Below, in pieces: positions 25,552 through 52,622 of a stretch of 64,000 nt of DNA. The stretch lies in sequence record MK817115.1; one strand, given 5' to 3'. Numbering within the stretch: position 1 is the first letter of the stretch; each line of letters starts with the position of its first letter. The notes beneath the pieces were generated by a model that searched no databases, was not told the DNA's origin, and saw only the letters and a list, made by a program, of their open reading frames with translations. Made by a program: the position numbers and the translations under genes.

Positions 25552-26388
25552 ATGGCTATGAATCCACTTGCTAAGTACACTAAAATTGAAGAGATCAGTA
25601 CTAAGTTAGTTACAAACGGCGTTATTCCTTATAAAGAAGGAGTTCTAGGTCCAAAAGGTGTCAAATGTGGAGTTTGTGCACGTAGTGCACGTGATGAAAT
25701 GACACTTAATACCCCCGATATGTTACTAAACGGAGATGCAGTATCCCGTGTTATTGAAAACTGTGTTCCTAATGTAATTGACGCTGATGAGTTGTATGTA
25801 AATGACGTTGAAATGCTTCTTATTGCTATTAAAGTTGCTTCTAAAGAAGAAACATATGATATTAACGTTGTATGTCCTGAATGTGAAAAAGAAGGTCGAT
25901 TTGAACGTAATCTATCATATCTTCTTGAAACTGCACAAGCATTTGAAGAAATCCCATCAATTGATTTAGATAATGGACTACGTTTAGAATTTAGACCACT
26001 GACATGGAAAGAATATTCATCGTTTGCTGAACGCATGTTCAGTGAGCAGCAGAAGACTAAGTTTCTTGAAACTGCTGATATTGATAAAGATGAAAAAGTA
26101 AAAATATTTTCTGAAGTATTTGAAAACATGGCTCAACTTAACTTCGATATGATTGGTGGAGTTATTGCAAAAATTATAACACCAGATGGTGATGAAGTAG
26201 TTGAAAAAGAATTTATTAATGAATGGCTTGGACAACAATCGAAGGGAGTACTTAAACTAATTCGTGAAAAAATGGATGAAGTACTTGAAATTGGTGTATC
26301 TCATAGTATGGAAGTAGAATGTGATGGATGTAATCATCAATGGGAAATTGATGGACTAAAATATGATCCTAGTCATTTTTTCGAGTAA
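25552..26388 (+). CDS. gp26: Baseplate hub assembly protein (gp26-like)
   Basis: MAMNPL..., ARDEMTLNTPDMLLNG, DVEMLLIAIKVAS, CPEC and CDGC zinc pairs. Confidence 0.8.
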   Translation: MAMNPLAKYTKIEEISTKLVTNGVIPYKEGVLGPKGVKCGVCARSARDEMTLNTPDMLLNGDAVSRVIENCVPNVIDADELYVNDVEMLLIAIKVASKEETYDINVVCPECEKEGRFERNLSYLLETAQAFEEIPSIDLDNGLRLEFRPLTWKEYSSFAERMFSEQQKTKFLETADIDKDEKVKIFSEVFENMAQLNFDMIGGVIAKIITPDGDEVVEKEFINEWLGQQSKGVLKLIREKMDEVLEIGVSHSMEVECDGCNHQWEIDGLKYDPSHFFE

Positions 26389-26597
26389 TGCTTCTCCAGT
26401 CATCTCCTGAAGAAATACAAGAAGTACTGAAGGAGATAGAACTGAATAAGTCAGAAATCAAAAATGCACTAATGGAATGTTCTGTATATATGGATAACAT
26501 TGACTATGGAACACTCCTTAATATGCCATTAATAGATAGAGACTTATTAGTTAAGTCTTTTAATAAAAAAATTAAAAAACAAAACGAGAAGCACTAA
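26388..26597 (+). CDS. gp51-like hub/tail assembly chaperone segment
   Basis: TAATG overlap with the gp26-like stop; DYGTLLNMPLIDRDLLV resembles the gp51-type SLSELENMxPWER motif. Confidence 0.6.
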   Translation: MLLQSSPEEIQEVLKEIELNKSEIKNALMECSVYMDNIDYGTLLNMPLIDRDLLVKSFNKKIKKQNEKH

Positions 26598-26608
26598 TTT
26601 TCATATAG

Positions 26609-26634
26609 CCAGCACATTGTTGCTGGTTTTTTTT
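26609..26634 (+). terminator. Intrinsic terminator
   Basis: CCAGCA-cattgt-TGCTGG followed by T8. Confidence 0.85.
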
Positions 26635-26853
26635 GGTTTTAAACTACAGAATTATTTGAATTGAATTATGAAAGGATTAATTTTAATATTATTGGATTCA
26701 TCTAACTCATTTCATTCGTTAGCTGAAGAATATTCGTTACTACGTAACTCATATTCATTTAATTAAATTAATTATAAAGAACTTTAAAAGATTTAATACT
26801 TGACGGGATTTGTTGAGGACATTTTCATCCCCCCGCAGGGGAATGAAGACAAT

Positions 26854-27307
26854 AAAAAAGAGACAATGAAGTCTCTATTTCTTGACGCTGATGGTTTCAG
26901 CATTTATTGTATTGCGAATTTCTTAAAAATATATTAAGAACGAAAGCGGGTTGCTCTGTTTCTCTCTATCGCAGTCATGTGCAACGGTCGTCAGTCTTAA
27001 TCATCCTGACACTCACCTGAAAGTCTATACAATCAAACTTCAGGCTGTTTATTAAAATCACTTAATAAACTCCCTTAGCAAATCTGGTAAGGTGCGATCC
27101 TTATATGTCTATCTAGGAACTCTCTGTATGCTTATCGGAGTTCTTTATTGAGCCGCATTGCCGTGAGGGGTTCAAACTATGCCCACATCTAACGGGTTTC
27201 TTTTGCTCATCGCACTGTTGAACTGCTCATCTGCCATCTACATTTTCGATAGGATCAGGTTCTAATTTATATGCATTTCTGCATTCAACAGGATTGTCAT
27301 TACTACA
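26854..27307 (-). ncRNA. Candidate ~450-nt structured non-coding RNA
   Basis: No ORF of 60 aa or more; own promoter (27314-27341) and terminator (AGAGAC-ttcatt-GTCTCT-T run, 26854-26876); many hairpins and a 7-bp long-range pairing. Confidence 0.6.
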
Positions 27308-27313
27308 ACAAAC

Positions 27314-27341
27314 ATTATAGCACAAACTTTAAAGTTGTCTC
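27314..27341 (-). promoter_or_regulatory. GAGACA-N16-TATAAT promoter reading into the non-coding region
   Basis: Minus strand GAGACA actttaaagtttgtgc TATAAT. Confidence 0.75.
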
Positions 27342-27395
27342 ACTATTTTTATAAAAATATTCATTAAGTACTTAAAATATTGCAAATAACTAATC

Positions 27396-27403
27396 TATAA
27401 ATA
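27396..27403 (+). promoter_or_regulatory. Late promoter TATAAATA
   Basis: Exact consensus upstream of the endonuclease VII-like gene. Confidence 0.7.
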
Positions 27404-27433
27404 TTTTGATAACAAATAGTTTGGTGAGGAATT

Positions 27434-27925
27434 ATGAAAAAAAGATTAAAAGATAGTAAGGATGCTGCAAACTATCGAAACGAATTGCTAAAGAAACAAA
27501 ATGGAATAGATCCTATAATTAAAGAACCAATAACTAAACCAGTACTGGATCACTACCACTATGGTAACCAACATTGTAGACAAGTTCTTCAAAATGAAGT
27601 CAATGCTTGGGAAGGAAAGGTACAAAACAGCTTCAATCGATATATGAAGCACTTAACTGATAAACCATTATATGAGGTACTCAGAAATCTTGCTGATTAC
27701 TTAGAGCGTAATAACAGCATTCCTGACGATGAACAAGTTATACATCACACTGCACTAACTGTGGATGTTAATAAGTTTAAAAGGCTTCCAGCAACACAGC
27801 AAAACGCGATTCTGGAAGGGTTAGGAGTTGTCCCTGGTAGTAACACTACTGCTCGTGTAAAGCAAGCTAGAAAGCTGATTAAGGACGGTAAATTAAATAT
27901 GGTTGATATAAAAAAAGGGAGCTAA
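27434..27925 (+). CDS. gp49: Endonuclease VII-like Holliday junction resolvase (gp49-like)
   Basis: KQNGIDPI...VLDHYH...RQVL...NAWEGKV follows the LDHDH...RGLL...N.xEGK pattern. Confidence 0.8.
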   Translation: MKKRLKDSKDAANYRNELLKKQNGIDPIIKEPITKPVLDHYHYGNQHCRQVLQNEVNAWEGKVQNSFNRYMKHLTDKPLYEVLRNLADYLERNNSIPDDEQVIHHTALTVDVNKFKRLPATQQNAILEGLGVVPGSNTTARVKQARKLIKDGKLNMVDIKKGS

Positions 27926-35408: not shown

Positions 35409-38072
35409 ATGGCAGATACAAGTAAAAAGTATGCACAACAGCAGTTGGGTCGTTTTGACCCATCTTATCCGCAGTTAGCAACTGTTATGGATAACAGAGA
35501 TCCAACTAAATCAGGAAAACTGAAAGTTTGGATACAAGGTTCTCAAAGTGATAAAAACTCAAAAGAATCATGGATAGAAGCATCTTACATGTCTCCTTTT
35601 GCTGGTAAAACACCAGGTATTCCAAGTGCTGATGCATATGGTCAATATCCAAAAGGATACGGTTTTTGGGCAGTACCACCAGACGTAGGGTGTACAGTTG
35701 TTGTAATTTTTGCACAAGCCCGTACATTCCAAGCATATTGGATTGGTTGTGTATATGACCAGCGTATGAATACTATGGTTCCAGGTATGGCAACTGAAGT
35801 AAGTAATTATGGTGGAACTGATATGCCACTTCCTGTTACTGACTATGATCGTAACACTATCACTACCGATATGCAAGACAAATATGCTAACGTTCCAATT
35901 ATCGCAGGTCTTAAAAAGCAAAACCTTTTATATGACGAAGAAGCTGGGTTGGCGAATCGTAGTAGTACTCGACAAACCACCAGTACTGTATATGGTATGT
36001 CTTCGCCACGTGGTAATAGTTTTATTATTGATGATGGATATACTGAAGAGGAATTAACAGCACCAACGTGGGATCAAGACCCAGATGGATATCAAGATAC
36101 ACAATTTAATAACCCAGTAAACGATACACGTGTTGGTTCTCGTAAAAATGAAGGTGTCGTAATAAAAACACGTAGTGGTGCACAACTTCTTTTATCAGAA
36201 GCTACTGGTGATGTTCTTTTAATTAACCGTGATGGCACTGCACGTATAAAATTCACTGGTGAAGGTGATATTGACATGCACTGTGATAAGAATATTAATA
36301 TTCGTGCTGGTCAAGATATTAATATTACTGCTGGACGTTCATATAATATTGAAACCGGACAAGATTTCAATGCACGAGTTGGTGCAAATACTAAATTAGA
36401 TCTAATTGGTGCTCTTGATGCAAAAGTTGGTGGACAAGTTGTTGTTAATTCTGGGGCAGACCTTCGTTTAGTTACGGCTGCATCATTACGTATGCAAAGT
36501 GGTAGCAGTACTGATATTACGGCTGGTTCAAATGCTTCTATTTCTGCCGCAACATCTGCAAACCTAATTGGATCATCATCAGCAATTATTAGTGGTGGTG
36601 GTCAAACATTAACAGTTAATAGTGGTGGTAATAGCGGTACTGCTGAATTTACTGCACCAAACTTTAGAACACCATCTGCTGGTCTTAATGAACACATTCA
36701 TGATATCGCTGCATGGGTTAACGCTGAAAATCATGGTAGTTATGTTGAACCACCAAGACAAGGTGGTGGAAGTGGTTCTAGTGAATCACCAGTACAACCA
36801 CAACCAGCAAATGATGTATCACCAGAATTACCCGTAGCACAAGACACTGAAGCTGTTCAGTTTGTTAACTATACATCAGAAACTGAACAAGTTCAATCAC
36901 AAGATTTGATGACATCTGATCCTGGGATGACTGGATATAGTATTACATATGAAGGTTTACATATGTTAATGCCATGTAGCGGTACTATTCGACAATATGG
37001 TTACTGGGGGAAAGGTGTTCCAACACAAAGTGGAGGAAAGGCAGACCGTTCAGGTTGGGAAATACAATGTAAAGGTGATGTAGTTGCACCAGATGGTGGT
37101 GTGGTAGTAATTACTAATGGTGCTCTTTTAATACAACATAAGTCTGGATATAAATCTATTTTTTATAATATTCAATCTGATTTATTAAACAAAGATGTTG
37201 TTCAAAAAGGTCAAGTTGTTGGAAAAGCAAATGGTGTCATACAGTTTGAAATTCGTGTTACATCAGCAAATGTTCTTGGATTCAGTGGTTCTGTTGACCC
37301 AGGATTATTTTATGCTTCACAAACAGGAACAGGGTCTGATGCGGCGAATAAAACATTAATTGGTGGTCAAGCAACTAATCAATCTGCTCCAAAAGCAGTT
37401 GTACAACCTTCAGTTGATAGTGATGAATTGGTAGTTACAACAAAAATCAAAACGATAGGTACTGGATATTCTCAACGTGGTTCTCGTCATGTGCCTCGTA
37501 GGAGAAGAACACAGAGAAGTGGAGCTTCAACAACTCCGGTGGAGCAACCTACCTATAATATTGGAAATGTTGATAAAACTGCAATCGATTGGAAAGTTGT
37601 TCCAGGTGATGCACAATTTATTTCTGAATTAAAAGAATATGAAGGTACATTACAATACCAACAAGCAAAAGGATATTATCGTAATGGTAAATTCTGGCGT
37701 TATTTGGATAGTCGTGGGTATCCAACTATTGGTTATGGTCACTTAATTATTAGTGGTGAAAACTTTTCAGATGGAATAACTGAACAGCAAGCCAACGATA
37801 TGTTAGTTCGTGATAGTAGTAAAGCTATATATGATGCTAAATCAATTTATGCTTCATACAACATGAAAACACCTTATTTGGCTCAACAAGTACTATGCCA
37901 AATGGTATTCCAGATGGGTAAAGGTGGGGTACTTAAATTTAAAACTATGTTGTCTGAATTAGCTAAAGGTAATTATAAACAAGCTGCTGCTCAAATACGT
38001 AATTCAGCTTGGTATCGCCAAACTACTCGCCGTGCTGAGTTAATGGCTCGTCGTTTAGAGGCATGTCAATAA
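35409..38072 (+). CDS. gp5: Central spike (gp5-like) with M23-like and lysozyme domains
   Basis: N-terminal OB fold (DNRDPTKSGKLKVWI, PPDVGCTVVVIF), beta-helix repeats, HIH motif, M23-like segment, C-terminal EYEG...YLDSRGYPTIGYGHL. Confidence 0.85.
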   Translation: MADTSKKYAQQQLGRFDPSYPQLATVMDNRDPTKSGKLKVWIQGSQSDKNSKESWIEASYMSPFAGKTPGIPSADAYGQYPKGYGFWAVPPDVGCTVVVIFAQARTFQAYWIGCVYDQRMNTMVPGMATEVSNYGGTDMPLPVTDYDRNTITTDMQDKYANVPIIAGLKKQNLLYDEEAGLANRSSTRQTTSTVYGMSSPRGNSFIIDDGYTEEELTAPTWDQDPDGYQDTQFNNPVNDTRVGSRKNEGVVIKTRSGAQLLLSEATGDVLLINRDGTARIKFTGEGDIDMHCDKNINIRAGQDINITAGRSYNIETGQDFNARVGANTKLDLIGALDAKVGGQVVVNSGADLRLVTAASLRMQSGSSTDITAGSNASISAATSANLIGSSSAIISGGGQTLTVNSGGNSGTAEFTAPNFRTPSAGLNEHIHDIAAWVNAENHGSYVEPPRQGGGSGSSESPVQPQPANDVSPELPVAQDTEAVQFVNYTSETEQVQSQDLMTSDPGMTGYSITYEGLHMLMPCSGTIRQYGYWGKGVPTQSGGKADRSGWEIQCKGDVVAPDGGVVVITNGALLIQHKSGYKSIFYNIQSDLLNKDVVQKGQVVGKANGVIQFEIRVTSANVLGFSGSVDPGLFYASQTGTGSDAANKTLIGGQATNQSAPKAVVQPSVDSDELVVTTKIKTIGTGYSQRGSRHVPRRRRTQRSGASTTPVEQPTYNIGNVDKTAIDWKVVPGDAQFISELKEYEGTLQYQQAKGYYRNGKFWRYLDSRGYPTIGYGHLIISGENFSDGITEQQANDMLVRDSSKAIYDAKSIYASYNMKTPYLAQQVLCQMVFQMGKGGVLKFKTMLSELAKGNYKQAAAQIRNSAWYRQTTRRAELMARRLEACQ

Positions 38073-38084
38073 ATATTTTAGTAC

Positions 38085-38092
38085 TATAAATA
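38085..38092 (+). promoter_or_regulatory. Late promoter TATAAATA
   Basis: Exact consensus upstream of the stand-alone lysozyme. Confidence 0.7.
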
Positions 38093-38108
38093 AAACGAGG
38101 ATATCTTT

Positions 38109-38597
38109 ATGAGTAAATGGGAAATTAAAAATACAGATGAGCAATTTTTTAAGGAAATTAAAGAATTTGAAGGAACTATTGCTTATCAGAAAAAACTTGG
38201 TTATTTTAAAAATGATAAGTTTTGGGTATATAAAGACAGCTTAGGTCTTGATACTATTGGCTATGGTCACCTAGTTTTACCTGGTGAAAATTTCAAGAAT
38301 GGTTTAACAGAAGCACAAGCTGACCAACTTCTTCTTAAAGATGCTCAAACTGCGTACAATGATGCAAAATCAATTTATGAACAATTTGGTATGACCGCAC
38401 CTGTACAGGTTCAACGTGTATTATGGTTAATGGTATTCCAAATGGGAAAAACCAAAGTTTTGAAATTTAAAAAAGCAATGACCGCATTAGGTAAAGCTGA
38501 TTACAAAACTGCTGGTAAAGAATTGCGTGATAGTACATGGTATAAACAAACCACTTCACGAGCGGAAAAGATGGCACGTATCGTTGAATCCGTATAA
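38109..38597 (+). CDS. T4-type lysozyme (endolysin or virion lysozyme)
   Basis: EFEG...YKDSLGLDTIGYGHL, MVFQMG, DSTWYKQTTSRA; E/D/T catalytic pattern present. Confidence 0.9.
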   Translation: MSKWEIKNTDEQFFKEIKEFEGTIAYQKKLGYFKNDKFWVYKDSLGLDTIGYGHLVLPGENFKNGLTEAQADQLLLKDAQTAYNDAKSIYEQFGMTAPVQVQRVLWLMVFQMGKTKVLKFKKAMTALGKADYKTAGKELRDSTWYKQTTSRAEKMARIVESV

Positions 38598-42602: not shown

Positions 42603-42650
42603 ATATCATAAATAAATCAAATGAATGAACGAATTATATGGAGTCCAAAA

Positions 42651-45600
42651 ATGACTAATAATTTTAAGTTTCAACCTACACAGATGGCTGAAGCAGTACA
42701 GAAGAAGCTTTTTATTAAAAGATTGCCTGAGTGGATGCAAGGCTTAGAAGATATTCAAAAAGTCAGTGATGATGTTATTCAACAATGGTTTAATCCGGCT
42801 GAAAACGAATTAGTTGACGGCTATATTGGTGATATGGGTTCTCCTGCCGCTGCTGGTAATATCTTCTTACATGAAAGTACTGTAGCACGTCAACTTTATC
42901 AGTTGTCCACTGCTTACGTCTCAAAAAATGATGATTCGACAATTCGTTCAATTCAATTTTATGATGATCTAGTTGGATACATGAATCATTATGGAGCACT
43001 AACCGATAATGAAAGCCGTTTGTTCAACGGTAAGTTTTATGCATGGACTCCAGCTATTAACCCAAATAAAATGAACAATTTTAGCTCATATCTTTGGGAT
43101 ACTAAAAACTCTTATAATATTACTTCACCTGATTACATTGTAATGGAACGTGGAGCACTTAATGGTAATACATGGTCACTACAAAACTTTTGGTATACTT
43201 TAGGTGAAACATTAGAAGATGGCTCAATATTAACTGAAGAATTAATGCAAGATTCACGTTTTATTCGTGCACGTGCACCAATTATTGAATATAATAAAAA
43301 TATTGAGCTAATTAACTACGGTACAAAATTCCGTGGAACTGTTGATCTGTTCTCTGATATTATTAAACCTGAAGATATCGTTCAAAAAGATATTAATAGT
43401 GGTATACGTATTGATGGTATTATTCCGCAAGATGGAATGCGTATTCTATTCACCAGTATTGGTAACAATGGTGAAAACAATAGAATTTATAATGTATATG
43501 TGAAAAAAATGCAAGATGGTACTCGTGTTTATGGTTTAGCACTAGATCCAGAAGAAGAAACCGAATCACGCCCAAGTGGTGAACCTCAAGATGGTGATGT
43601 TGTTCTAATCACTAAAGGTAATGAGTATGGTAATAGTTCTATGTACTGGAATGGATCTTTGTGGGTTCGTGCACAATCAAAAACTAGTGTTAACGTATTC
43701 CCTAAATTCCAACTTTATGATCGTAATGGTATCAAACTTGACAACAGTACTACATATCCATCAAGTAACTTTAAAGGTTCAGAGTTGTTTGGTTTTAAAA
43801 TAAATTACAACTATGCAACTGATAGTGTATATGGATATAACATTGAACTTGGTGATTATAATTATTACATTTATGAAAACTTTTTACAATCCCAACGTTA
43901 TACCTATGACCATCTTGGAAAAGAAGTTGAAATTGATGGTTTATACTATTATAACATTATTGATGAAAATAATGAAATGAATCTTCAAACCGATTGGGTT
44001 CGTTCAGAAGAGTACTCTAAACAATTTGTAAAACAAACTCCACAAGTCCAACGTACTGATATGTATCGTGTATTCAGTACTGTTTATGATATGGAAGTTT
44101 TTAAAGAACCAGTTGATGGTATGTATGCATATGTTATTGAAGTTGATAGAACATATCAGTACTATAAAGCTGACCGTGAAACTTATCTAGATTGGCATCC
44201 AATTACTGGTGATGGTGTTCAGATTGTAAAATATGACCATACATTCGAATTGGCACAAAAAGTTTTAGATAATGATTCTGATATTATTGAAGTTGTGGTT
44301 GATGGTGTTGATGTGTCCAAATATACCAAAAATGTTTCAAAAGGTCAAGTACAAAGCATCACTCTAGATAGTACTGTAGAATTGGATGAAGATTCTGTTA
44401 TTCAAATTAGAACTTATAGCAGTACTGTAACTCCTAATAAAGAATTAGGTGCATATGAAGTTCCAATCAACCTACAAAATAACCCATATAATTCTAATAT
44501 TATATACATTAACCAAGGTGACTACACTTTACATTTTCAGGATATTATTCAAAAGAACATTACACGTGGTTCTTCTGATGATTTCAATGACTATGAAGAA
44601 CGTTTGGCTAAAGGATTGGTTAATAATGGCGTAGGTACTAAAATTATCCAAAATGAAGCATCTATGCTTCCATTGATGGCACATACTGCAAATGAAGATA
44701 TTGATTTGTTTGAAGCAACTATGTTTATGCAATCTGAATATTTTAGATTCATTAATAAATTTAATACACAAATGCTTCGTATGTATGATGAAAATCCATC
44801 AGACTTTTTACAAAATAGTGCTGCAAACATTGTTGATGCAATTTTAACTACTATTAATATGGGACGTGATAGTTCATTCCCATTCTATTATGATAATGTT
44901 GGAAGTACTTCTGGATTCATTCGTGCATTTATACCACCAACACCACAGTTCTTAGGTATTCTTCAAGCATATGTACCAGAAAAAGCGACATTCCTCACTG
45001 CTGGTAGTAAACCAAGCTGTTATAACATCAGTCATACTGGTATTATTTCCAAAGCATACCGTGTTATCAATGGTGTTGATAAAATGGATGATGTTGTATA
45101 TGAATTAGAAAATAGAATTTTTAATAGTATTGATAATAAATTCAAAGATGTTGATTACGTACCAGTATTGAATAGTGATGACCTTTTCCCTACACCATAT
45201 TTCACTAAAACTGAATATAGTGCTGAAGAGAAACAAACATTATTACTACGTGGATACATTAACTTCACCGCAACTAATGGTATCAGTAATAGTACACATG
45301 ATTATGATCCTAACAATTGGAGAACTTGGAACTATACTGGCACTTATTATGTAGTTAATGGTCAAAGTACTGAAATTCCTGCACGTGGTTCATGGCGTGC
45401 CATTTACACTGACCAATATGGTACATATCGCCCAGCTACCCATCCGTGGGAAATGTTTGGCTTTACACAACGTCCAACTTGGTGGAACCAAGAATACGAA
45501 CCAACGGCTGTTCAAGTTGGTGAACGTGATAGTGATGTTGTATATGTATATGAAGCACTTGTTATGAATGAGCAAGGTGATTTAGTTCCTAGTGGTCTTT

Positions 45601-48600
45601 GGGATATTGACGGAACTATTGGAGATAGCAGTACTGGAACTATTTTATTTGGTGATCGTCGTGGTCAATATGACAAATATAAAAGATTTGGTGTACAGCC
45701 ATTCAAAATTACAAAAACTGGAAATAAAACATCTTCTGGTATTGATATTTGTGTGGTTGAATATATTGCACCTGAAATTTTAGGTTTAGTGTCTGGATCT
45801 TTAAATCATAGAGCAGAACCTTGGACATATGGTGATATGGGTGACATGGAATTTACATACATGAACACTACATTGTTTGCATATGACCAAATGATGCTTT
45901 TGTATAAAGCTAAACCAGCACAATTTGCTAACTATTTCTGGGATACCCGCAACGATAACTTAAAAGAAGTATTCACTGATGGTTCACAATTCCTTTATGG
46001 TGATACACGTAAGCGTATTAATTTTGATAAAAATACAGTAGTTCATGGTGAAAATAGCACAAGAACAATTGGTTATCAAATGTTTGTAAGTGACCATTTG
46101 ATGTATCAAAATAAAAATATTACCACCAAGTATGGGGATGTAGTTCGTTCTTCTTATATAAATGTTGGTCATAAAATTGGAGGATTTACTAAAGCAGATC
46201 AGCTAACATTCAATGCTAAATCTTTCGGTCTTATTTCACAAGAAAACCAAACCATTGGTCTTGTTCGTTCTAATAATATCCGTGATGAGCAAATGAGTGC
46301 GATCAAAATTACTTGGAATGGTAGTGCATATCAGATTGATGGATATGATCTAGTTGGTGCTAAATTTAAATATAAACTTCCAGTAAAAAATGGTAGAAAA
46401 GTAACTCTTAAATTGGAAAACCGTAATGTTGTTCATTATAATGAATGGAAGTCTGAAGCTTCAATTGAATATGGTAAAGTTTTCAATAGTTACCAAGAAG
46501 TTTATACTTTTATTTGTGGATATGGTGAATATCTTAAAGAACATGGTTGGATTTTTGAAGATGTAAATGATAGTGGTGCTCAACAAGATTGGAACACTAT
46601 TGCTAAAGATTTCGTGATCTGGAGTCAGAATTCTCTAGTAACTGGTGAATTTATTTCTTGTACCCCAAGTGCTGCAAACGCTAAATTTGGGGCAGACTTT
46701 GGTTCAGTACAATCTATTACGCAAAATAATGGTGGTGTATGGTCATTACTTGATGATAATAACCAAGGTATTCGCCAATATGAAATTGAAACTTCTCGTA
46801 TTGGAAATATCTTCACTGTTAGAACTTTAGAATCTAATAAACGCATTGCATTGATTCGTTTAAGTTTGTGTTCATATGAACATGCTGTTATTTTTGATGA
46901 TAAAACTATTTTTGGTGATTACATTTATCAGCCAACATATGGTTCTATTCAAGAACTAATTAAAATGTATGGATATATTACTGGTTCATGGACTGGTCGC
47001 CTACAAGCTCCTGGATTTATTATCTTGGAAGCTGGAACACTACCATCATTTGAAAAATTAGTGTCGGATTTCCAACATTATTATGATAGTGAAACTCCAG
47101 TAAGTGATGTACAATTACAAGAGTTGTCAAACCATTTGATTGGTTATCAATCTCGTGATTATCTACAGCGTATGATTAGTAGTGATGTTAGTCGTGTTGA
47201 TTTCTATAAAGGATTCATTCACGATAAAGGTACTAACCAAGTTTTAGAACGTGTACTTCGTGTTTCTAAATCATATGACACTGATGAATATAAAGCATTA
47301 CAAGAATGGGCATTTAAAATTGGTACATATGGTAATATTGATGGTAAGAAAAACCTTCAATTTAAACTAATCAATGACCAATTTAAACAACAACCTCAAA
47401 TGGTTTCTTTTGATGTAAATGCAACTTCAAATGGTAATGGTAATCATATTGTATACTTCGGTGAGCAAGGTAAAGATCCTCGTTGGATTACACGTCCAAA
47501 TGGTAAGTTCTCATTCCCAATGCGTAGTGGAAGAAGTGAAAACATCCAACTTCCAGATATTGGTCCAGTAACATTGGATGAAGTATCGTACACAACAAAA
47601 GATTTCAGTACTGCATATAATGACCGCATAACTTATACTAATGGTAAAGGTGAAAATCCTGAATCTGTGTGGATGTTTAAAGACGGTAATGGTTTGTGGA
47701 ACATTTTTGAATTGGTTGATACTAATGTACAAATGGTTTCTATAACACCTATTGAAAATACCGATGTGTATGCTGAACAATTTTGTAAAGTAACTTTAAC
47801 TGATAATGTACCACTTGAAGATGGTGATTATTATTATTTTGTTGATGAAACTAACTTTATGCCAGATACTTTAACAGTAGAAAGTCAATATTATACTGCT
47901 GGTTCTGATCCTAAAGTTATGGTAGTTCCATTTGACACTTCTATTGATATTGAATTTACTGATCCAGATACACGTCCACGTTTGTATCGTTATGTATCAC
48001 GTTTTGCCAGTACTGATGAACGTCAAGCTTACATTGACAAGAAATATAGTTTTAAAGCACCACAAAGTACTTTATTTGATCGTCCAACGACATATGATGA
48101 ACGTACTAACATTACTGAGCTATATCTAAACGTTTATGACCCAATTAATGGTGTTATTCCAGGTGCGGCTATGCAAAACGTAACATATACTTCACCAGTT
48201 GATCCTGCACAGTATAATAGTAATGGAGAGTTAATCCAGGCTTGGGGTGCTGATAAAGTTGGTCAAGTATGGTGGAACACTAGCACTGCATTTTATTTGG
48301 ATTATACTCGTGCAATTTATGACGCAGACGGTAATGTTGATATTGATGCAACCAATGAATACAAACGTTACAACTGGGGCCGTTTGTTACCACATAGTAC
48401 CATTGATGTGTTAGAGTGGGTTTGTTCACCAGTTGAGCCATATAACTGGGACAAATACTGTAAAGATGTTGCTAAGAAAAACAAAAATAATACTATGTAT
48501 CTACCAAGTGGAACTGCACTTGAAGATAATTATAGTACATTTTTGGAATATGATAGTTCAACTGATAGTTATGTAACAAAATACTATTTCTGGGTACGTG

Positions 48601-51600
48601 ATACAATTTATGTACCACCACTACATACCAGAACGAAATCATGTACTGACATTGCTCGTATTATTAAAGATCCAACACAGCTAAACATTCCTTGGTTCGC
48701 TCCAATAAATGAAAACTCGTTTATTCTTAGTAATATGCAATTTAAAGTGAATGATGATACCAGTATTTTAACTGTTTCTTATTACATGGATAGTACTGAA
48801 GTTGTTAAACATGACCAGTATCAACTATGTAAAGAAGGTGACAGCTATAACTTTAACCCACTAATTTGGGATTCAATGTGGAACTCACTAATTGGTCAAG
48901 AAACAACTGAATCAGGTTCTGTGATTAATTTATTATATCCAGATGTTGATAACGGTTTAGGATCAAACAAAACTTGGTTCCAAAATGTTATAGAAGCTCG
49001 TAGAAACTTTGTAGAAAGTGCTAATAATTATTATAGGTCACAAAACATAACCACTAATAGTGTTGTTATGGAAGATGTGTTTAATGTTAAAACCACTGAA
49101 GTTAACCCTAATGAAGTTTCTTTCCGTGTATTGTCTTACAATAATGAATTAGTTATTGCAGTTGAAAGTGATAAATTTAAAGAAAATGACGCTGTTATTT
49201 TAAGTACTAGTGGATATCTACCAAATCCATTAACTTCTAGTGCTGTTTATTTTATTCACTTCGACGAAAATGGATATATTCAGTTAATGAATAGTCCAGC
49301 AAACGCGGGTAGTGTTGTTACTATAACGTTAGAGAACAAAGGTGAGGGACAACATAAAATGATTAAACAATCTGATTATGTTGAATCACTAGGAACTTCA
49401 TTAGACATGACTCAGTACTGGTCATATGCTGATTGGTATGATGTTGGATATGATAGTAACACGACTTATACTCAAGAGTCAAGCTTAGAAGATGCTAATA
49501 CTAAAAACTACCAAGTTGGCGATATTATCAGAGTTACCGATAGTGAAAACATTTGGACATTGTATATTAAATCACAATCACGCGATTCAATTTATTGGAA
49601 AGCGATTGGTCGTGAAAACAGTACAGTTGAACTCAATGATATGCTTTACGCAGATTATAGTGTTCATAATGATAATGGTTCACTAAGCAATCGTGAAATC
49701 AACGTTCGTAAAGCACTAGCTTTACTCAAAAATTCTTTCGATTTACATCAAAGCGAAATTGTTTTTGATATGGTCAAATATGTACATGTTGAACAAAGTG
49801 TTGTGGATTGGGTATTTAAAACATCATATATCTATATTGTTGGTTTGGAACAATCATTAGTTCAAAACTATTCAAACGATAATTTGATTAATCAAATTGT
49901 TGAATATTTTGAAGAAGTTAAACCTTATAGAACTAAAATTCGTTCACAAATAGAGCAAAAGACATCTGATGATGATTTAATAAAAGGTCTATGTAATGAT
50001 TTAGATCCTAATGGATATATTTTCGTTGATGGTTCTTGGATCAAAACTGAAAAAGATATTTGGGATTATGAGTACGCTCAATTTAATGAAATTACCCAAA
50101 AATGGGAACAGGTAGGTTCACTACCAAGTGATTTCGTTACACCAAATAGAAGATTCCAAGAAATTGATATTATTATGCATTATGATAATATTCAGTGTAA
50201 ACCAAATGAAGATTTGGCAAGCATAAATGAATTAGTAAGTGTTAATAACAAATATCAATCCAATGAAAAGGATGCTGTTAGTAACTATGAATTACAACGT
50301 TATATATATTCTTTCCCAGAATATAGTGAAGAAACTTTCGATCTTCTTATTGCTTATCAAATGCAAATCTACTATCCAGAATTGGATGTAACACTAGGAA
50401 CAGCATATGGCGTTAACCAGTGGTATAAAGACCATGCGGAAGATTTAGAAGCAACTGATGAATTCACTGCTACATTGGAACGTGTTTATAAAGAATCAAC
50501 GCATAACGATATGTTTACTGACCTTAGACAATATGTTCAGTATAACACATTGGCAAACCGTTTGAAACTTTATAAAGATATAAGTGATGAGAAAATTCAC
50601 GATGAAGTTGGATGTGGATTTAGTGGACTTACTTATAATGACAATCCTAGTACTAGACTTCCATTAGGCTTTTCTTCTAGTAATGATTATAACTATGGAT
50701 ATTTTGAAATAAGCAGTGAATTGTATCAAAAATACATTTCATTAATTAAAGATAAAAATCCTGACGCATCAGACTATGAAGTAAAAGTTAAACTTGAAGT
50801 TGAGTATGGTGTATATGTTTATCGTTATGATGAAGTAGGTGGTGATACCCGTTTCTATACTGATGCTATTCACGTATTAGCAGGTATGAGAGGGTTATTC
50901 GACAAAGACGCTACTGATAAGTACGAAAAAGCTGAAGAGATTCTTAGTAAGACCCCAATTGATATCTATGCAATTACAATGATTCCACGAAAATATGTTT
51001 ACTTAAATGTTAACGGTGTATATCAAAGTATACCTGATGAACAAAGTATTGATGATTTCATGGAAGATTATTTTATCACAAATGGTGAAATGGTTGAACT
51101 AGCTGAAATAAATCTTGATGATTTACCACTAGATCAAAATAATCCAATGTATTCTGATTATCAATATATACTTGATAGTATTACTGAAGCTAAGTACTTC
51201 AATGATATGAATGCATTTGATAACCTAGCATTGGAATCTCAAACTTCTTCAATAAAATGGGAAGTTAAAGATGATGAAGTTGATCCTTATATTGTGGATA
51301 TATCTGACATAAACCCTTCTGGGCGTGATGTAGGTCAAATTAGATTTACAGTTGATGGATATGGGTTTGACAATGTATCTCTTGTACAATTACGTGATAA
51401 CAGCAGATATCAAACTGAAGGTATGGCAATTATCAATCCATATAAACATACAGAAGCAATTGTAAGTATTCCTTCATATGCTAAGATTGAAAATGATATT
51501 AATAAAACAACATCGAAGTTTGATGAAAAATATTTCTATCGTGTGAGATCTATTAATAGCTTAACTGAAGCAGAAATAGTTGACAATGACCTATCTGATG

Positions 51601-52622
51601 GTGATAAGGTGATGATTTTCACTCCTGATGGTGAAGATTTTGTGAGATATCAAAATCACACATGGGAAACAATCTTGCGTGTATCTAACATCAAAAACAA
51701 TACAACTCCGATCCTATTCACTGTAAGAAATACAGGTAAGGAAACGATTGAATTGATTGATGAGAGTACTGGTGCAGTTCTCCGTTATGATAACATCACT
51801 CTTGCACAACAAAATGAGCCAGTACAGCCTCTAGCATTGAACATTGTTCGTGTTAGAACATTTGCTGACCCTGAATTTGTCAAGAATGGTATTAAATTGT
51901 ATGAACAAAATAGAAATTACACCATTGATGTAATTAATTATGATGTTTTCTACGATACTACTTTAAATGGTGGTAAGTACAATGACGGAATAACACCAGA
52001 TGACGTTGACGTTTGGATAATCTCCAATGAAATATTTGATGTTGATGGAATTACTATCGATAACGGTTATAACTTACCAATTACGGGTGCGGGAGTTCTT
52101 AGTGAATTGGCAAGAACTAAAATGACTGATAGTTTAGAAATCAACGTTATCGAATATGATTCAAGTGTTATTCAACCGTTTAGAAATAATGAAGGGATAT
52201 GGGTTTATGGATTCCCAATGGTTGACGGTATGTATATCGGTGTTGTTGGTGGTACTGTTACTAACATCACAACCATTAGTGAAGAAAATACAACCTATGT
52301 TTCTCAACCTAAATCAATAAGTCCTTATAGTATTAGAAATAATGTTTTATCCGGTTCAGCCGCGAACATGAATGATATTATATCGATTGGATATGAAAAA
52401 GTTGAAGTTAGAAATGCAAATAATTTACTCCGTGGTGTAATGTATAGTGCAGAACATGATTTTAAACTTAATACCACATATTCTTTCAATGGAATTAATT
52501 TAGGTAATTATGATATGTTAAAACGTTACACACAAAATAGTTACACTATAGATCTTTCAGTATACACTGATAGTCTACAAGTTAGTGGTAATGATATTAA
52601 AAATATATTATTAGTTAAGTAA
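42651..52622 (+). CDS. Giant (~3,323 aa) structural protein, probably gp7-like baseplate wedge
   Basis: Uninterrupted ~10-kb ORF directly after gp6, with late box and GGAG RBS. The gp7 role is inferred from position only. Confidence 0.75.
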   Translation: MTNNFKFQPTQMAEAVQKKLFIKRLPEWMQGLEDIQKVSDDVIQQWFNPAENELVDGYIGDMGSPAAAGNIFLHESTVARQLYQLSTAYVSKNDDSTIRSIQFYDDLVGYMNHYGALTDNESRLFNGKFYAWTPAINPNKMNNFSSYLWDTKNSYNITSPDYIVMERGALNGNTWSLQNFWYTLGETLEDGSILTEELMQDSRFIRARAPIIEYNKNIELINYGTKFRGTVDLFSDIIKPEDIVQKDINSGIRIDGIIPQDGMRILFTSIGNNGENNRIYNVYVKKMQDGTRVYGLALDPEEETESRPSGEPQDGDVVLITKGNEYGNSSMYWNGSLWVRAQSKTSVNVFPKFQLYDRNGIKLDNSTTYPSSNFKGSELFGFKINYNYATDSVYGYNIELGDYNYYIYENFLQSQRYTYDHLGKEVEIDGLYYYNIIDENNEMNLQTDWVRSEEYSKQFVKQTPQVQRTDMYRVFSTVYDMEVFKEPVDGMYAYVIEVDRTYQYYKADRETYLDWHPITGDGVQIVKYDHTFELAQKVLDNDSDIIEVVVDGVDVSKYTKNVSKGQVQSITLDSTVELDEDSVIQIRTYSSTVTPNKELGAYEVPINLQNNPYNSNIIYINQGDYTLHFQDIIQKNITRGSSDDFNDYEERLAKGLVNNGVGTKIIQNEASMLPLMAHTANEDIDLFEATMFMQSEYFRFINKFNTQMLRMYDENPSDFLQNSAANIVDAILTTINMGRDSSFPFYYDNVGSTSGFIRAFIPPTPQFLGILQAYVPEKATFLTAGSKPSCYNISHTGIISKAYRVINGVDKMDDVVYELENRIFNSIDNKFKDVDYVPVLNSDDLFPTPYFTKTEYSAEEKQTLLLRGYINFTATNGISNSTHDYDPNNWRTWNYTGTYYVVNGQSTEIPARGSWRAIYTDQYGTYRPATHPWEMFGFTQRPTWWNQEYEPTAVQVGERDSDVVYVYEALVMNEQGDLVPSGLWDIDGTIGDSSTGTILFGDRRGQYDKYKRFGVQPFKITKTGNKTSSGIDICVVEYIAPEILGLVSGSLNHRAEPWTYGDMGDMEFTYMNTTLFAYDQMMLLYKAKPAQFANYFWDTRNDNLKEVFTDGSQFLYGDTRKRINFDKNTVVHGENSTRTIGYQMFVSDHLMYQNKNITTKYGDVVRSSYINVGHKIGGFTKADQLTFNAKSFGLISQENQTIGLVRSNNIRDEQMSAIKITWNGSAYQIDGYDLVGAKFKYKLPVKNGRKVTLKLENRNVVHYNEWKSEASIEYGKVFNSYQEVYTFICGYGEYLKEHGWIFEDVNDSGAQQDWNTIAKDFVIWSQNSLVTGEFISCTPSAANAKFGADFGSVQSITQNNGGVWSLLDDNNQGIRQYEIETSRIGNIFTVRTLESNKRIALIRLSLCSYEHAVIFDDKTIFGDYIYQPTYGSIQELIKMYGYITGSWTGRLQAPGFIILEAGTLPSFEKLVSDFQHYYDSETPVSDVQLQELSNHLIGYQSRDYLQRMISSDVSRVDFYKGFIHDKGTNQVLERVLRVSKSYDTDEYKALQEWAFKIGTYGNIDGKKNLQFKLINDQFKQQPQMVSFDVNATSNGNGNHIVYFGEQGKDPRWITRPNGKFSFPMRSGRSENIQLPDIGPVTLDEVSYTTKDFSTAYNDRITYTNGKGENPESVWMFKDGNGLWNIFELVDTNVQMVSITPIENTDVYAEQFCKVTLTDNVPLEDGDYYYFVDETNFMPDTLTVESQYYTAGSDPKVMVVPFDTSIDIEFTDPDTRPRLYRYVSRFASTDERQAYIDKKYSFKAPQSTLFDRPTTYDERTNITELYLNVYDPINGVIPGAAMQNVTYTSPVDPAQYNSNGELIQAWGADKVGQVWWNTSTAFYLDYTRAIYDADGNVDIDATNEYKRYNWGRLLPHSTIDVLEWVCSPVEPYNWDKYCKDVAKKNKNNTMYLPSGTALEDNYSTFLEYDSSTDSYVTKYYFWVRDTIYVPPLHTRTKSCTDIARIIKDPTQLNIPWFAPINENSFILSNMQFKVNDDTSILTVSYYMDSTEVVKHDQYQLCKEGDSYNFNPLIWDSMWNSLIGQETTESGSVINLLYPDVDNGLGSNKTWFQNVIEARRNFVESANNYYRSQNITTNSVVMEDVFNVKTTEVNPNEVSFRVLSYNNELVIAVESDKFKENDAVILSTSGYLPNPLTSSAVYFIHFDENGYIQLMNSPANAGSVVTITLENKGEGQHKMIKQSDYVESLGTSLDMTQYWSYADWYDVGYDSNTTYTQESSLEDANTKNYQVGDIIRVTDSENIWTLYIKSQSRDSIYWKAIGRENSTVELNDMLYADYSVHNDNGSLSNREINVRKALALLKNSFDLHQSEIVFDMVKYVHVEQSVVDWVFKTSYIYIVGLEQSLVQNYSNDNLINQIVEYFEEVKPYRTKIRSQIEQKTSDDDLIKGLCNDLDPNGYIFVDGSWIKTEKDIWDYEYAQFNEITQKWEQVGSLPSDFVTPNRRFQEIDIIMHYDNIQCKPNEDLASINELVSVNNKYQSNEKDAVSNYELQRYIYSFPEYSEETFDLLIAYQMQIYYPELDVTLGTAYGVNQWYKDHAEDLEATDEFTATLERVYKESTHNDMFTDLRQYVQYNTLANRLKLYKDISDEKIHDEVGCGFSGLTYNDNPSTRLPLGFSSSNDYNYGYFEISSELYQKYISLIKDKNPDASDYEVKVKLEVEYGVYVYRYDEVGGDTRFYTDAIHVLAGMRGLFDKDATDKYEKAEEILSKTPIDIYAITMIPRKYVYLNVNGVYQSIPDEQSIDDFMEDYFITNGEMVELAEINLDDLPLDQNNPMYSDYQYILDSITEAKYFNDMNAFDNLALESQTSSIKWEVKDDEVDPYIVDISDINPSGRDVGQIRFTVDGYGFDNVSLVQLRDNSRYQTEGMAIINPYKHTEAIVSIPSYAKIENDINKTTSKFDEKYFYRVRSINSLTEAEIVDNDLSDGDKVMIFTPDGEDFVRYQNHTWETILRVSNIKNNTTPILFTVRNTGKETIELIDESTGAVLRYDNITLAQQNEPVQPLALNIVRVRTFADPEFVKNGIKLYEQNRNYTIDVINYDVFYDTTLNGGKYNDGITPDDVDVWIISNEIFDVDGITIDNGYNLPITGAGVLSELARTKMTDSLEINVIEYDSSVIQPFRNNEGIWVYGFPMVDGMYIGVVGGTVTNITTISEENTTYVSQPKSISPYSIRNNVLSGSAANMNDIISIGYEKVEVRNANNLLRGVMYSAEHDFKLNTTYSFNGINLGNYDMLKRYTQNSYTIDLSVYTDSLQVSGNDIKNILLVK

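Follow-up and report, generated by a model that had tools for sequence, protein, structure and literature searches.

A large, multiply pseudoknotted non-coding RNA, apparently undescribed, in RaK2-like jumbo phages and in bacterial chromosomal islands

Elaborately folded large RNAs of bacteria and phages are rare, and each has either opened new biology or stays a well-known puzzle. The RNAs of the ROOL, GOLLD, OLE and raiA type are several hundred nucleotides (nt) long, combine many helices with pseudoknots and conserved unpaired positions, occur in phage or mobile DNA and have their own promoter and terminator. Structured transcripts are also found in other settings: in ColE1 RNA II and in the T4 origin transcripts oriF and oriG a host-polymerase promoter lies ahead of a structured transcript of several hundred nt, and lambda nut and HK022 put are phage antitermination RNAs that lie past an early promoter and before a terminator, with a hairpin and a conserved box. 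In the Pseudomonas jumbo phage PA5oct, a distant relative of the phage studied here, RNA-seq defined the non-coding RNAs ncRNA002 and ncRNA004, which are free of open reading frames (ORFs) and 450-620 nt long (PMC7318152). In this study a stretch of 64,000 nt from record MK817115.1 (the window) was analysed. The window belongs to Escherichia phage PBECO4 (NC_027364.1, Asteriusvirus, 348 kb), with 100% identity over the stretch queried; window position x is NC_027364.1 position x + 278129. Its minus strand contains, from 27341 to 26640, one self-contained non-coding RNA unit of a new family, which resembles the ROOL-type RNAs in all the properties listed above.

A total of 41 non-redundant homologues were used for the analysis of the fold. 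Of these, 29 came from two pattern scans of viral contigs and from nhmmer, and 12 more from one pattern scan each of genome and metagenome contigs; these last gapped-pattern scans returned mostly chance matches and yield examples, not a census, so that copy numbers taken from them are given as minimum values. Analysis of the alignment revealed about 19 conserved helices across two domains, including four pseudoknots. RNAalifold, applied to the 29 copies, found compensatory double changes in 51 of 78 predicted pairs. Among the 41 copies the helices consisted of 85-100% standard pairs, compared with 20-50% for slid controls, in which the 3' partner was displaced by 1-2 columns. When all 103,740 column pairs were ranked by a G-test with average product correction, proposed base pairs filled 21 of the first 25 places and 42 of the first 100, where 0.02 and 0.085 were expected. 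Within the 5' domain, helices P2, P3 and P4 together with pseudoknot PK1 (helix names are our own) showed 99.0% paired cells against 80.9 +/- 0.8% for shuffles (0 of 500 reaching this value) and 26-46% for slid controls, the 99.0% figure being from an alignment that was model-fitted to the structure, which favours that structure; both-side changes were found in 14 of the 20 pairs. Pseudoknot statistics were obtained with custom scripts. The folding energy of the 453-nt minus strand was -109.8 kcal/mol, compared with -95.2 +/- 5.0 for shuffles (z = -2.9), and none of 100 shuffles folded as well. Within the helices G.U was more frequent than A.C (228 against 73 cells), and the minus strand is therefore the RNA strand. 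Covariance model R1, which served for searching only, follows the RNAalifold structure with GUUGC/GCGAU, although GCAAC is the better-supported partner.

Analysis with sensitive BLASTN revealed the region in 72 phage records, all of them RaK2-like jumbo phages, at identities down to about 67-75%. The recorded hosts are Escherichia, Salmonella, Klebsiella, Erwinia, Yersinia, Serratia, Cronobacter, Pectobacterium and Xanthomonas. By BLASTN, 4-5 matching places occur per genome, and two in the RaK2/K64-1 group. PBECO4 holds four paralogues on the minus strand of its record (37965-38506, 93655-94126, 195097-195545 and, for the window copy, 304919-305474), which are 66-80% identical to one another, co-oriented and placed in different gene neighbourhoods. 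Over 264 kb of PBECO4, covariance model R1 detected these four and no others; for 200-278 kb and 342-348 kb the four-copy count rests on the BLAST places per record. All copies seen within any one genome shared the same orientation in five genomes. In phages Munch and GAP32 the context of the window copy, between endonuclease VII and baseplate genes, is kept; there is no downstream gene, and the RNA runs into a bidirectional terminator. The best matches in Serratia phage BF and in RaK2 lie in another context than in PBECO4. The kept and differing contexts indicate that the duplication is older than the genera, and paralogues are found at syntenic sites across genera. The genes downstream of the copies are unrelated (ADP-ribosylglycohydrolase, hypothetical proteins, or none).

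The 5' domain (27088-27291; this and the following positions are on the minus strand) comprises helices P1-P6, which are 83-100% paired against 20-50% for slid controls. P1 (27291-27284/27222-27215) is accompanied by the GAAA-loop hairpin P1a (27283-27272) and by P2 (27258-27231), and is followed by P3 (27209-27205/27153-27149), by P4 (27195-27192/27164-27161), which encloses a variable hairpin, and by P5 (27143-27117) and P6 (27103-27088). Pseudoknot PK1 (27226-27224/27214-27212) wraps the 3' strand of P1 and is 100% paired; its middle pair is UA in 18 copies, AU in 11 and CG in 11. A tertiary pairing of 3 bp, PK3 (27158-27156/27107-27105), is 98% paired, and its centre pair, which switches from G-C to A-U, ranked 12th of 101,025 column pairs.

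The 3' domain (26906-27079) comprises an invariant junction, GCUAAGGGAG (27079-27070), and helices P8-P14, which are 88-100% paired: P8 (27070-27047), P9 (27044-27016), P10 (27011-26989), P11 (26985-26981/26954-26950), P12 (26973-26969/26917-26913), P13 (26966-26962/26946-26942) and P14 (26940-26920). P11 crosses P12 and P13 and forms the fourth pseudoknot, and pairs of P12, P10 and P9 rank among the top-scoring column pairs. Pseudoknot PK2 joins the loop of P9 (27033-27027, AUUGUAU) to the tail of the domain (26912-26906, AUACAAU). It is 99.6% paired in the 41 copies, with both-side changes at all seven pairs and a private matching 6-7-mer in each paralogue. The long unpaired segments vary little or not at all, for example CGAAAAUGUAG, CAGAUGAG, GAAACCCGU, CACGGCAAUGCGG, GAUAGACAUAU and CGACCGUU...GAAAC..G....ACCCGC. 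Some copies have an additional hairpin module of about 35-50 nt, marked by UACAAU and GUCC-AAAAUU motifs, at the tip of P8, of P14 or of both (examples at L050:38072-38209, L004:1739-1875 and L005:1396-2044); it resembles the peripheral elements of large ribozymes.

An earlier note on this DNA, made from the letters of the window, had named eleven stems and proposed that covariation in homologues be tested. Nine of the eleven are conserved with compensatory changes in the 41 homologues: CTGTTGAA/TTCAACAG, GAACTC/GAGTTC, CCTTA/TAAGG, GTTTATTAA/TTAATAAAC, CCTGAA/TTCAGG, GTCAG/CTGAC, GTTGC/GCAAC, TTCTTAA/TTAAGAA and the stem of the terminator. The other two did not hold: the long-range pair GTGCGAT/ATCGCAC is 51% paired, the same as controls, and GCTGA/TCAGC is 22% paired in that register. 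The bases read as a GCAA tetraloop actually lie within a 7-nt bulge between two helices.

A sigma-70-type promoter was identified by motif scan at 27341-27314, where the earlier note had placed it, with GAGACA as the -35-like element, a 16-nt spacer and an extended -10 element, TG-n-TATAAT (hexamer at 27319-27314). The arrangement G(G/A)(G/A)ACA / TGnTATAAT is kept among the aligned copies. Transcription would start near 27307, and from there a structured core of about 430 nt, defined by covariation in 29-41 homologues, extends to the end of Box1 (26881-27307). The intrinsic terminator expected behind the core is also present (26876-26854), but it is weak: the stem AGAGAC/GTCTCT (26876-26859) has 6 bp, three of them G-C, with a 6-nt loop and a U-run. 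This stem covaries and is 90% paired in the 41 copies. The terminator is missing from the 94-kb and 195-kb PBECO4 paralogues and their relatives. In the 94-kb paralogue (L051:44150-44229) and in L015 and L032, a terminator-like hairpin with a U-run was observed between promoter and core, and its position suggests attenuation at the extreme 5' end in this group.

The core lies within the extent first proposed (26854-27307), but the conserved unit continues about 210 nt beyond the terminator, to about 26640. Every copy is followed by a C4/G6 hairpin, UUCAUUCCCC-UGCG-GGGGGAUGAA, with a 9-bp stem (26847-26824), and by a conserved 3' box, CCUCAACAAAUCCCGUCAAG (26818-26799). The last ten bases of this box repeat Box1 (AUCAGCGUCAA, 26892-26882), so that Box1 and Box2 (26811-26800, within the 3' box) form a direct repeat of the type A-Y-C-N-CGUCA-R. 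In 264 kb of PBECO4 the hairpin and the 3' box are present only at the four RNA loci, which rules out the 3' box as a general promoter motif of the phage. In all 41 copies, Box1 and Box2 agree with each other letter for letter at four variable positions. The agreement spans three parallel changes in the RaK2 lineage, and the boxes differ between the PBECO4 paralogues, with an ACC version in one and an AUC version in the other three. A search for a complementary partner of Box1/Box2 gave none. Read on the plus strand, each box resembles a -35 hexamer, with promoter-like sites opposite Box1.

Behind the 3' box, a downstream conserved module (26798-26640, minus strand) consists of an AT-rich stretch followed by a pair of hairpins (26736-26748 and 26702-26722, plus-strand numbering) whose loops and flanks carry motifs of the ACGAA type. 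It is present after most copies, chromosomal ones included. The stem of the second hairpin covaries (CATTC/GAATG, CAATC/GATTG, CATAC/GTATG, CTAAC/GTTAG). In many copies a same-strand gene begins about 20 nt past these hairpins. The module could serve as a leader common to these copies, as a further small RNA or as a set of origin-like repeats.

Comparison with known RNAs revealed no family to which the unit belongs. A scan of the whole window with the covariance models of Rfam 15 at gathering score gave no hit; the families covered include ROOL, GOLLD, OLE, raiA, RNase P, tmRNA and group I/II introns, as well as 6S, HEARO, small ribozymes and riboswitches. At E values up to 10 over 26400-27600 the only hits were to terminator-type small RNAs, all outside the core, and the Rfam scan of six other copies found nothing inside the RNA. 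ARAGORN found no tRNA or tmRNA genes in the window. A group I/II intron was ruled out because the RNA is free-standing between complete genes, is antisense to both and has its own promoter and terminator. The absence of tRNA, tmRNA, RNase P and intron hallmarks reported from the letters is consistent with these results, and the Rfam scan proposed at that time leaves the novelty standing. A cis-regulatory leader or riboswitch of a consistent gene was likewise rejected, since the window copy has no downstream gene and the downstream genes differ between copies. No description of this RNA element was found in the literature that was searched. Covariation in 41 homologues, the excess of G.U over A.C, the lack of a coding signal and the lack of a match in Rfam or the literature strongly support the conclusion, first raised in the earlier note as a possibility, that this is a large ornate RNA with its own promoter and terminator, apparently undescribed.

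Copies were also found in bacterial chromosomes. Among 5,426 complete E. coli genomes, two (LR-29-1 and EEC_W5) carry one full-length copy, which is 70% identical to the window copy and 80.6% identical to the best sequenced phage copy. In both strains it sits between ffs and ybaA, in one and the same island of about 10.7 kb (L390:4958-15302 in LR-29-1, NZ_AP027515.1; the same in L391 for EEC_W5), with the RNA unit at about L390:8900-9640, and it retains every part of the unit, its own promoter included. The island encodes a tyrosine integrase split by IS3, uncharacterised proteins, a resolvase and a DuOB/DUF488/mSLOG-DUF4326 set (PADLOC candidate PDC-M45). Three ATCGATCGTT repeats occur near the RNA (L390 9975-10025). 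No recognisable replication gene was found among the island proteins, none of these proteins has a PBECO4 homologue except for a generic DUF4326 domain, and Pfam, PHROGs, PADLOC and NCBIfam assigned no function to the island proteins beside the RNA.

At least three further copies are in integrative islands, of a Buttiauxella metagenome-assembled genome, of genome-contig record L241 and of a 232-kb metagenome contig (L346). The loci are L192:896-7118, L346:3733-14625 and L241:6361-7830, and their shared core is the RNA, a CI-like helix-turn-helix/S24 repressor, a Cro-like protein and an uncharacterised protein of 286 amino acids (aa), of which L241 shows the RNA and the repressor only. In all three the RNA converges on the CI-like repressor gene, and read-through would therefore be antisense to the repressor. 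The integrase is of the tyrosine type in L192 and of the large serine type in L346, and the 232-kb contig carries the KwaA/KwaB (Kiwa) defence pair as cargo. The Buttiauxella copy, like that of E. coli, is intact and has a promoter of its own. A plasmid collection gave no match to the RNA.

In the window the unit is flanked by two plus-strand genes, a 69-aa ORF (26388-26597) downstream of the baseplate-hub gene and endonuclease VII (27434-27925), and is antisense to both, with no gene downstream of it. The gap between them (26597-27434, about 800 bases) lacks ORFs of at least 90 aa, and no gap of this kind in the window is longer, in agreement with the ORF-free gap described earlier. The 69-aa gene has a strong bidirectional terminator (26607-26628), which on the other strand marks the limit of the downstream module. 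Genes for T4-like replication and recombination adjoin the locus; the suggestion that the RNA is expressed with them found no support, as it lies antisense to each of its neighbours and its host promoter is of an early type. The GC content of the RNA region (0.38-0.40) exceeds that of its immediate flanks (0.27-0.30), as had been noticed, but is not above that of nearby coding DNA. The annotation of the gap is empty in G17 and reads only 'repeat_region' in UE-S1, and 3-4 hypothetical proteins are annotated beneath the match in several other GenBank records. The same window also contains a single ORF of 3,333 aa (42621-52622, plus strand).

As to function, we favour a stable RNA that would be made early and in abundance and would act in trans, by engaging a host factor or by forming a ribonucleoprotein (RNP) or RNA assembly, with a probability of roughly 0.45 as judged from sequence comparison. 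This preference is based on the stable-RNA-like layout and on the intact island copies. Dosage would come from the number of co-oriented genes and from their strong promoters, as it does for stable-RNA genes. With its compact, knotted fold the RNA would bind a factor that uninfected enterobacteria already contain, or sequester it, and would act as a take-over device, an anti-defence sponge or an RNP scaffold. The RNA might also self-assemble, in which case PK2 could be intermolecular. Intact promoter-bearing copies in uninfected bacteria point to a host component or the RNA itself as partner, which is probably not phage-specific. Autonomy is further supported by the differing genomic context of the paralogues, with promoter and terminator in place. 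Three points weigh against this explanation. A simple sponge or scaffold model gives no role to the conserved 3' extension or to the identity of Box1 and Box2; the terminator is weak, and absent in some paralogues, so that read-through is allowed and cis roles are possible; and it is equally possible that the island copies act only when a phage infects, as decoy or hijack.

The unit may instead be a replication-origin module, in which a host-polymerase transcript serves as a primer or R-loop RNA in cis, the downstream hairpins, boxes and AT-rich stretch are origin DNA, and islands would carry a copy in order to replicate. Such a module would account for the 4-5 copies that lie scattered in one orientation over about 350 kb of genome, beside T4-like replication and recombination genes, for a unit-specific non-coding module (G6 run, AT-rich stretch, ACGAA-type repeats) that always lies behind the RNA, for promoter-like sites on the opposite strand at Box1, and for islands that hold the whole unit and not just the core; the E. 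coli island, with its nearby threefold ATCGATCGTT repeat and no recognisable replication gene of its own, would also fit. However, it is not obvious why a primer RNA should need four pseudoknots or dozens of unpaired bases that do not vary, most copies have a terminator between the core and the proposed origin DNA, and the AT-richness is ordinary for intergenic DNA of PBECO4, and we consider this explanation unlikely. A cis-acting transcription element, either a put/nut-like processive antiterminator or a large leader controlling read-through past the terminator, would have the nascent RNA modify its own polymerase or switch structure. The layout of promoter, structured RNA, weak terminator, and hairpin with box is what such an element would show, as are the same-strand gene about 20 nt past the hairpins in many copies, the paralogues without terminator and the island units that converge on a CI-like repressor gene. 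It is made distinctly improbable by the window copy and its Munch and GAP32 orthologues, which run into a bidirectional terminator with no gene downstream, by the lack of relationship between the downstream genes of different copies, and by a size and fold complexity far beyond known antiterminator RNAs.

The boxes are central to a further explanation, that of a self-processing or formerly mobile ribozyme-like RNA, with Box1 and Box2 as sites of processing, ligation or recombination around a cassette of about 80-100 nt. That the two boxes match each other in 41 of 41 copies, through parallel changes in the RaK2 lineage and in differing versions between paralogues, would fit. A knotted fold with invariant junctions is what ribozymes typically have, and the unit occurs in unrelated mobile contexts. 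The RNA matches no ribozyme or intron model, however, and the paralogues at syntenic sites across genera argue against recent mobility; we regard this explanation as very improbable. That there is no RNA gene at all, and that the region is a decayed protein gene, a set of unannotated small ORFs or a DNA-level repeat, could be read from the automatic small-ORF annotations in several records and from the 'repeat_region' of UE-S1. Analysis of the homologues revealed no conserved frame (the longest stop-free run is 45-147 codons, in a frame that is inconsistent between copies) and no 3-base periodicity of substitutions, as the autocorrelation of variability falls steadily (0.47, 0.40, 0.30, 0.13) without a lag-3 peak, and the compensatory changes and G.U tolerance are strand-specific. 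A protein-coding gene or pseudogene was rejected on these grounds, and the probability of the whole explanation is close to negligible.

Beyond the trans-acting function favoured above, a wider interpretation can be put forward only tentatively, and we hold it to be well short of even odds: the RNA may represent a new class of multiply pseudoknotted RNA, possibly catalytic or self-assembling, common to virulent jumbo phages and to host islands that carry defences. The position of the island counterparts beside anti-phage systems hints that the RNA lies on a line of phage-host or phage-satellite conflict. If so, the phage would depend on 4-5 specialised paralogues, and with its single copy an island would take advantage of that dependence or jam it, the RNA serving as a decoy or as a hijacked origin or signal; this would be an RNA-level conflict between phage and island without described precedent, and the self-identical Box1/Box2 repeat would mark a new mechanism of processing or copying. 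The family looks tractable, with cultivable E. coli phages (phage Sharanji is recorded with host E. coli K-12 MG1655), four natural variants per genome, a diversity sufficient for a confident secondary structure, and a counterpart in host islands, alongside anti-phage systems such as Kiwa and the candidate PDC-M45. Annotation would also gain, since 72 jumbo-phage records leave units of about 800 nt blank or filled with spurious small ORFs.

Comparison with the described systems places the RNA apart from each of them. PA5oct ncRNA004 (618 nt; L149:817-1500) likewise has a C-run/G-run hairpin at its end, with a GAGTT...ACGAA motif behind it that resembles the module of the present unit. The best nhmmer match to ncRNA002/ncRNA004 had E = 0.016 over 43 nt and covariance models R1 and R2 found nothing significant, and hence the PA5oct RNAs are not counted as members of the family. 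Like lambda nut and HK022 put, the present element lies between an early promoter and a terminator and has a hairpin and a conserved box, but it is 5-10 times larger and the window copy has no antitermination target downstream. With ColE1 RNA II and T4 oriF/oriG it shares the host-type promoter ahead of a structured RNA, the G-run and the AT-rich DNA downstream, and the dispersed copies in a genome of T4-like replication; in contrast to these, a terminator splits the core from the downstream DNA and the fold is far more constrained. RNAs of the ROOL, GOLLD, OLE and raiA type form oligomers, and the loop-to-tail pairing of PK2 could be intermolecular in the same way (PMC12286853). The present RNA differs from these RNAs in that it has no match to their Rfam models and no adjacent tRNA genes, occurs as 4-5 diverged paralogues per genome, carries a 3' extension with a repeated box, and is found in jumbo phages of Enterobacterales and in islands.

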